Under the pieces are notes generated by a model. That model did no database searches and was not told the DNA's origin. It worked only from the letters and a program-made list of their open reading frames with translations. The position numbers and the translations under genes are program-made. This document shows positions 25,175 through 25,798 of a stretch of DNA of 32,792 nucleotides, piece by piece. Numbering within the stretch: position 1 is the first letter of the stretch; every line of letters begins with the position of its first letter. The DNA comes from Octopus bimaculoides (Eukaryota). The stretch spans positions 10,869,722 through 10,902,513 of the forward strand of contig NC_068989.1 of the NCBI RefSeq assembly GCF_001194135.2, given 5' to 3'.

Positions 25175-25798
25175 GTCTTGGTACAAAAGATGAAGTACAG
25201 CAAATATTCTGCTCAATACCACAGATGTGCTTGTTAGTTGCTTGTCCTTCACTAGTAGAGCATGTCCTTTGGTGGTACTAGAGAATCATCTGGATTTGGG
25301 TCACACAACAGAGAACAGATTGACAACAGTACTTTTGAGATAGTCAATGCTGGTGACCACTGTGAACGTAGTATATCCAAACAAATACTGCCATTACTAT
25401 TGATATTTGGATGATATATTCTCGTTGTAAAATTTATCTTTGGAGGCTTGAATGGGTAATCCGAAGTAGTGGGGAAGCATCATAGTCATGTGTTGAGAAG
25501 AATTCTTTGGCGGTTGAATAATTTCCCTCTGGAGACATGGGTGTTTTATTCAACATCCTTAAACAACCCTCATTCAGGGATCTTTTGAGTAGGATGGGCT
25601 ATTCAATCTGAAGAAAATTCTAATTGGGCCCCCACCTGCAAGAGCATAAGTTGTTTATCTTGATATGAGATCACCATGTCGCGCACATATGGTTGTGATG
25701 CATGTACCTGGTGTACATTAACCAGACGGGTAGTCATGATGAGTAAATTGGGCTTTTATATTTTACCCCAGTGTCACTTTAATGACATGCACTGCTCT
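25175..25798 (+). repeat. Interspersed retroposon-like repeat hosting the UBE2D fragment
   Basis: Segments CAGCAAATATTCTGCTCAATACCACAG and AACATCCTTAAACAACCC...GAGATCACCATGTCGCGCACATATGGTTGTGATGC resemble an abundant octopus repeat as I recall it; not verifiable within this window. Confidence 0.5.
25273..25461 (-). pseudogene. UBE2D: Processed fragment of ubiquitin-conjugating enzyme E2 D (UbcH5/effete), residues about 59-121
   Basis: Codon-by-codon translation: [66 protein letters not shown] motif and catalytic Cys are intact; no start codon and no flanking splice sites. Confidence 0.92.

Follow-up and report, generated by a model that had tools for sequence, protein, structure and literature searches.

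A UBE2D fragment, probably captured as cDNA from spliced mRNA, inside a dispersed repeat of Octopus bimaculoides

Moore & Haber and Teng et al. are both said to have described, in 1996, the capture of Ty1 cDNA at double-strand breaks in yeast, and mammalian templated insertions of class 2 were reportedly described by Onozawa et al. in 2014. These are the closest relatives of a locus that we have analysed in a 32.8-kb stretch of O. bimaculoides DNA (the window), where 63 codons of UBE2D lie within a repeat. In common with templated insertions and captured cDNAs, the octopus locus displays what appears to be an internal piece of a spliced transcript, at most a few hundred bases long, with neither poly(A) nor target-site duplication, with a small deletion and from a single event; either orientation occurs among the known cases. 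Whereas those cases are experimental or somatic, the octopus piece is fixed in the germline and resides inside a repeat copy.

Processed pseudogenes are alike in that they do not retain the conserved intron positions of their parents (for the octopus piece by proxy, from four lineages), are dead on arrival and decay neutrally. In contrast to them, the octopus piece has no poly(A), target-site duplication or mRNA 3′ end, and covers only codons 59-121 of 147. Buzdin et al. are said to have described U6-L1 and mRNA-L1 chimeric retrocopies that arise by LINE template switching. Such chimeras share with the octopus locus the fusion of a cellular RNA-derived segment to retroelement sequence, the retroelement nature of the octopus host being putative; however, the known ones are sense-colinear and carry the segment at the 5′ end of the element, whereas the octopus piece is internal, has repeat sequence on both sides and is probably antisense. 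Pack-MULEs and Helitrons also embed host gene fragments in repeats, but their fragments are genomic, contain introns and occur in many copies, while the octopus fragment is apparently spliced and the other copies of its repeat that we examined are without it. Compared with the UBE2D/UbcH5/effete E2s (UQ_con), 60 of the 63 residues agree with the canonical animal sequence, HPN motif and Cys85 included, yet the piece amounts to ~45% of the domain, without a start codon and without the N-terminal E1/E3-binding helix or the C-terminal helices. The locus is a known kind of event and an ordinary genomic scar.

The UBE2D piece and its probable transcript of origin

25273..25461 (minus strand): UBE2D-derived insert, from translation, tblastn and Pfam, with limits set by alignment to the uninterrupted copy L086

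An initial sequence-only reading had reported 63 uninterrupted minus-strand codons at 25273-25461. Translation reproduced exactly these residues, which correspond to D59-P121 of UBE2D/UbcH5. The observation is thereby confirmed, and the results below support the interpretation that accompanied it. The proposed identity, a UBE2D/UbcH5 catalytic core with HPN motif and catalytic Cys85, both of which are intact, was borne out by tblastn with a human UBE2D2 query (amino acids 56-127 against 25476-25255(-), 86% identity, E 9e-38) and by the Pfam profile UQ_con (PF00179; positions 55-117 of 140, E 1.3e-28). With the same tblastn query, no further UBE2D segment was found in the window. BLAST had also taken in the residues 'FPT' upstream of D59 as UBE2D; as L086 contains the same stretch, 'FPT' is host-repeat sequence, and the limits 25273-25461 given earlier are thus exact. 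Decayed N- and C-terminal UBE2D coding sequence had been seen by eye in the flanks. This candidate was rejected, because frameshift-tolerant protein-to-DNA alignments of the flanks with UBE2D amino acids 1-58 and 122-147, both local and edge-anchored, were no better than those of shuffled controls.

Neither edge of the UBE2D homology has an AG/GT splice signal, in agreement with the earlier reading. No poly(A) or A-run and no target-site duplication is present at the junctions 25272/25273 and 25461/25462, where repeat sequence adjoins both ends of the piece. The surrounding reading frame is open for 74 codons, from an upstream TGA to a TAG at 25252-25254, and provides the UBE2D piece with neither an in-frame ATG nor a stop of its own. 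The earlier statement that the piece has no start codon thus holds; the region, described there as absent from the ORF track, is not free of annotation, as a TTG-started ORF covers part of the piece and the UniProt entry A0A0L8GEF3 is built on the locus.

Compared with the mollusc-invariant sequence, the piece carries three changes, V67I (ATA), A68N (AAT) and P118S (TCT), and the same three residues depart from the sequence common to molluscs, arthropods and vertebrates. P118S is the previously noted replacement of DDPLV by DDSLV, which is correct but incomplete as the sole difference. In simulations, three amino-acid changes equate to ~2% neutral divergence, and 84% of the simulated copies were still free of stops. 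Since the frame remains open in most copies at ~2%, no selection is needed to explain it, and the piece appears to be decaying neutrally. Applying a published octopus calibration, a JC distance of 0.09 for ~25 My (PMC13282606), to the three amino-acid changes dates the insert to roughly 6 My, with a range of ~2-15 My. The insert is probably younger than the repeat copy in which it resides, whose flanking motif copies differ by 13%, small as these numbers are.

As proxies for the octopus parent gene, the UBE2D coding exons of four lineages were mapped. Scallop (L001), apple snail (L002), cod (L004) and Nematostella (L005) have the same exon boundaries, with exons for amino acids 41/42-66, 67-101 and 102-147(133). 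The introns given in the earlier reading for vertebrate UBE2D genes, after K66 and at V102, are therefore found in cod and likewise in the three invertebrates, and their presence between K66 and V67 and between K101 and V102 in all four lineages implies that they predate the cnidarian-bilaterian split. The octopus piece starts within the first of the three exons, 17-18 codons from its beginning, takes in the whole second exon and ends after 20 codons of the third. Two intron positions are thus crossed uninterrupted and both ends lie mid-exon, which argues for spliced RNA and not for an exon or genomic duplication as the source. We infer this RNA origin from the intron positions in other animals, assuming that the octopus parent has kept them.

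Over the exon for amino acids 67-101, the piece is 83-84% identical in nucleotide sequence to scallop and snail, a level that none of 80 UBE2D-encoding metagenome loci reaches, their identities being 80% or less. Its closest relatives at the nucleotide level are molluscan genes, which points to a molluscan source. The scan of metagenome contigs that gave these 80 loci did not contain the octopus parent gene, none of them exceeding 80% nucleotide identity, and no cephalopod UBE2D was among the best 120 matches of the full-length search; the octopus UBE2D protein presumably belongs to an 1859-member cluster.

The exon maps also revealed tandem alternative last coding exons, each with its own stop, in scallop UBE2D (amino acids 102-147; L001 at 55341, ~63750, ~72220 and 87010) and in Nematostella UBE2D (L005 at 11391, 13700 and 26290). 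Three to four such copies in scallop and sea anemone suggest mutually exclusive terminal exons. The gene models P0144 (scallop) and P0145 (mussel) wrongly join two of the alternative UBE2D last exons.

The host repeat and the insertion site

23851..25090 (plus strand): decayed remnant of a Tc1/mariner transposase, interrupted by frameshifts and stops (Pfam HTH_Tnp_Tc3_2; tblastn with P0121)
25090..25165 (plus strand): motif copy 1, a 39-nt stem-forming motif followed by (AAT)12 (RNA fold z -2.6)
25166..25272 (plus strand): left arm of the host repeat, 77% identical to L086 543-668; its minus strand gives the ORF tail 'PKDMLY*'
25462..25799 (plus strand): right arm of the host repeat, 70% identical to L086 702-1054; its minus strand is the source of the model's 'exon 1' and of the spurious 'FPTTS'
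25822..25888 (plus strand): motif copy 2, the same 39-nt motif followed by (AAT)3(AAG)5 (RNA fold z -2.0)
25889..25985 (plus strand): short coding-like remnant 'HVVSECLKLAQRDY..HDDVERLIHWEIC' with one frameshift, from translations; no Pfam or PDB match

Both flanks of the piece had been called repeat-like. They belong to one dispersed repeat, with limits at 25166-25799 that bear out the earlier 25175-25798 almost exactly, and with copies in L086/L087 and in four O. bimaculoides proteins. L086 and its near-identical twin L087 are colinear with the window at 25148-25273 (77%) and 25463-25799 (70%), and L088 1228-1376 matches window positions 25636-25784 with 76% identity. The translated left arm aligns with O. 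bimaculoides P0308, while phmmer with the right arm matched P0301 and P0305-P0309. In a search of 1.84 billion representative proteins, the plus-strand translation of 25463-25822 proved to be shared by seven small ORFs, three from Logan contigs with different flanks and four from distinct O. bimaculoides proteins (P0305, A0A0L8IBF0; P0306, A0A0L8HA28; P0308, A0A0L8GS47; P0309, A0A0L8IEC1). The latter four are paralogous copies of the repeat in the same genome, and the host sequence thus occurs as several diverged copies at unrelated loci, as is characteristic of a dispersed repeat. The longer phmmer matches P0300, P0302-4, P0310 and P0312 were discarded as unrelated repetitive proteins.

Where the window holds the 189-nt UBE2D piece, L086 has 33 nt between its arms. 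When the insert is removed in silico, the translation of the window runs through the junction together with P0308 and P0305 and differs from them there by ~2 codons. Replacement of a short stretch of the repeat, as put forward in the earlier reading, is hence seen in both comparisons, amounting to 33 nt relative to L086 and to ~2 codons relative to P0305 and P0308. As judged from the other copies, the target loss at insertion would be about 5-33 nt, and junction overlaps of 1-3 nt are possible (TGG/GGT on the left, C/CG on the right).

L086, L087 and L088 contain no UBE2D sequence, and all three independent copies that span the site (L086/L087, P0305 and P0308) are without the insert. In a search of 5.8 billion proteins, only one protein (P0001) among 3299 UBE2D matches bears the I67/N68/S118 signature. 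The earlier reading had left the choice between a one-off chimera and a repeat subfamily; the insert-free spanning copies, though a sample of just three, and the single signature-bearing protein favour the former. Judged by these comparisons, the insertion looks like a single event accompanied by a small target deletion.

As regards the class of the host, the repeat yielded no Pfam, Rfam, tRNA or PDB match, either in the window or, for Pfam and PDB, in the translations of L086 and L088. A tRNA-derived SINE was rejected as the host because neither a tRNA nor an Rfam match was obtained. The plus-strand frame of the right arm, with two stops in 120 codons, was also dismissed as coding evidence, being equalled by 12% of shuffled sequences and 32% of genomic windows. 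Three plus-strand stretches show a putative resemblance to the post-RT and zinc-knuckle / restriction-like-endonuclease region of R2/R4-Dong/Hero-type LINEs. One precedes the repeat in L086 (..YMGIL.EDVIKH..KLNAKNIIAAINSRAV..), another follows it in L088 (..VSECSILAQKD..RRPGLLVV..IIDFTV), and the third is the coding-like remnant at window positions 25889-25985 (HVVSEC..HDDVERLIHWEIC), which looks like the zinc-knuckle/restriction-like-endonuclease end of these elements. A stretch similar to this remnant also comes after the repeat piece in L088. If the resemblance is right, the host would be a 5′-truncated LINE remnant and the UBE2D piece antisense to it, in line with the earlier reading; we regard the piece as probably opposite in sense to the host repeat.

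Motif copy 1 is located directly left of the repeat copy and adjoins the Tc1-like remnant. Over their 39 nt, the two motif copies are 87% identical. They are part of a 67-nt direct repeat (25090-25156 and 25822-25888) that brackets the host repeat copy, and the 39-nt motif folds to a stem of 7-8 bp. This direct repeat could originate from tandem insertions into (TAA)n, from an internal duplication or from a long target duplication. It was also considered as the natural end of the Tc1-like transposase, whose homologues terminate in ..VKARGGHISY, codons that the motif matches only weakly. The combination of stem and (AAT)n has no match in the rest of the window, in metagenome contigs or in viral contigs. 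The Tc1-like remnant itself is 39-58% identical to intact homologues of 340 amino acids and ends 8 codons before their usual ..ARGGHISY C-terminus; terminal inverted repeats were not found for it.

Further repetitive sequence is scattered over the window. At ~21033-21330 (plus strand), a tRNA-derived SINE-like head (GGCGCGTGGCTTAGTGGTTATGG ... GGTTTCGATTCCTGG) with A-/B-box-like motifs precedes a TG/TA microsatellite; it is not called by ARAGORN or Rfam. Long Asp/Gly-rich and Val/Cys-rich 'ORFs' at 13990-14397 (plus strand) and 13300-13480 arise from ATG/TGA/TTG trinucleotide microsatellites and are probably non-coding. The largest 'repeats' (1147-1776/31610-32239 and 9730-9957/18001-18228) and most families returned by the repeat finder were rejected, as they consist of N runs and TA/TG/AAT microsatellites.

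Routes of insertion

We consider it likely that a 189-nt piece of spliced UBE2D mRNA was captured once, as cDNA, at a break in a copy of this O. bimaculoides repeat, and that it has been neutral and non-functional since. According to this model, a DNA break would have occurred inside one copy of the dispersed repeat, and a cDNA fragment of an internal part of spliced UBE2D (effete/UbcH5-type E2) mRNA, or a product of RNA-templated synthesis, would have been joined in during end-joining repair, with the loss of a few to ~30 nt of the repeat at the site. The captured piece would have arrived without promoter or start codon and with neither poly(A) nor target-site duplication, and the subsequent neutral decay of ~2% would have been too little for a stop so far. 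We infer the repair mechanism, the neutrality and the age alike. An internal piece, the lack of poly(A) and target-site duplication, the small loss, the probable opposite sense and the single copy all fit cDNA capture during break repair, and the locus shows the hallmark of templated insertions, a stretch from the interior of a transcript in place of target sequence, of which little is lost. A classical LINE-mediated retrocopy does not fit this anatomy.

A retroelement RT might instead have switched template from the host RNA to UBE2D mRNA for 189 nt and then back to the host ~5-33 nt further on, so that the insert would be as old as the repeat copy. The insert almost keeps the register of the host and has cost it little sequence, as such a double switch would leave it, and the host repeat may be LINE-derived, to judge from its motifs. 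The position of the repeat copy between two stem motifs with (AAT)n is also in keeping with this route, as (TAA)n microsatellites are the targets of Dong-type LINEs, in a snail among others (PMC3812793), and Dong-R4 elements constitute the most numerous recent LINE insertions of O. vulgaris (PMC13282606). However, template-switch chimeras keep one sense, whereas a plus-strand reading of the repeat, which the coding-like remnants suggest, would make the UBE2D piece antisense. In addition, the insert has decayed by ~2% compared with 13% for the motif copies and 23-30% for the repeat copies, which hints, on small numbers, at an insert younger than its host, and no RT or endonuclease domain was detected in the host repeat. 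We consider template switching unlikely.

The templated repair of a break could also have drawn on DNA, if an older intronless UBE2D retropseudogene or retrogene was copied in ectopically. The anatomy expected from such a donor is the same, namely an internal piece that lacks poly(A) and duplication and has cost the target little sequence, but no second UBE2D-like sequence with I67/N68/S118 appeared among the predicted proteins, and we regard this source as distinctly improbable. A gene-capturing repeat family or subfamily, with the UBE2D piece as part of its consensus, has very little to commend it, given that L086/L087, P0305 and P0308 are without the piece (only three independent spanning copies), that a single predicted protein bears the signature and that the 32.8-kb window contains no second copy of either repeat or insert.

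The annotation of the locus raises the question of a real exon.

25252..25677 (minus strand): span of gene model A0A0L8GEF3, whose protein sequence is readable off the locus as two exons

The best match in the protein collection is UniProt A0A0L8GEF3 (P0001), a 'UBC core domain-containing protein' of 78 amino acids from O. bimaculoides; since its sequence can be derived from this locus, the protein assigns the window to that species or a very close relative. Its exon 1 (25677-25636) is repeat-derived MVISYQDKQLMLLQ with the donor CAG/GTGGGG, and its exon 2 (25446-25252) starts from an AG acceptor inside the UBE2D piece, whereby DYPFK is removed; 14 antisense-repeat residues are placed in front of the UBE2D part and six behind it. 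With 74 open codons, a plausible donor and AG acceptor, and HPN motif and Cys85 intact, the piece might be taken for genuine coding sequence, an exon of a small gene that is expressed as a truncated E2-like protein. Yet the first exon and the last six codons of the model are opposite-strand repeat sequence, the acceptor falls within the UBE2D homology, the Pfam match is confined to profile positions 55-117 of 140, an uninterrupted frame is what chance predicts after 2% decay, and the gene is not on record in indexed assemblies. The chances of a genuine exon appear remote on this evidence, and A0A0L8GEF3 is probably a gene-prediction or annotation artefact, spliced from scrap and repeat.

An assembly chimera at the junctions is scarcely credible, for although the draft sequence of the window is a short-read scaffold with gaps (ten N runs, 3483 N in total) and very many microsatellites, both junctions lie in 10 kb without N (nearest gaps at 19307-19751 and 29942-30305), the derived substitutions indicate that the piece is not merely parent-gene reads, and the sequence on either side of the piece follows one repeat copy colinearly, as for a true insertion.

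Function and annotation of the fragment

Of the E2 fold, the UBE2D piece retains strand 4, the HPN loop, Cys85 and the crossover helix, but not helix 1, strands 1-3 or helices 3-4. Of the attributes of a functional E2, the HPN motif and the cysteine are present, while the complete UBC fold (~140 positions), a start codon and the exon structure of the family are missing. As a third of the E2 fold, the piece reads as a non-functional, dead gene fragment. In mouse oocytes, processed pseudogenes feed small-RNA regulation of their parent genes. It is very doubtful that the octopus piece is more than inert scrap, be it through read-through transcripts of a transcribed retroelement remnant, whose 189 nt of near-perfect antisense UBE2D would feed piRNA or endo-siRNA tuning of the essential parent gene, or through the 78-amino-acid ORF acting as a Cys85 decoy. 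If either were true, the locus would in addition be a clean germline case of RNA-templated break repair in a cephalopod.

The repeat copies P0305, P0306, P0308 and P0309, recorded as 'uncharacterized proteins' of 49-103 amino acids, are translations of the repeat and so probably not genes. Separately, the Logan/JGI ORF calls P0148, P0151, P0158 and P0301 read TGA as W (for example ...KYAMW... and SWWYVLLW); 'proteins' called in this way from eukaryotic contigs are therefore mechanical and constitute no evidence of coding.

As one further case, the locus brings no conceptual change unless expression or small-RNA production is shown. It presents a tidy, datable spliced-RNA fragment in germline DNA without LINE hallmarks, the product of a type of event that is rarely documented outside yeast and mammals. 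For the E2 family and for the gene inventory of O. bimaculoides, it means that A0A0L8GEF3 and at least four 'uncharacterized proteins' of this species, being chimeric or repeat-derived gene models, should be left out of both.
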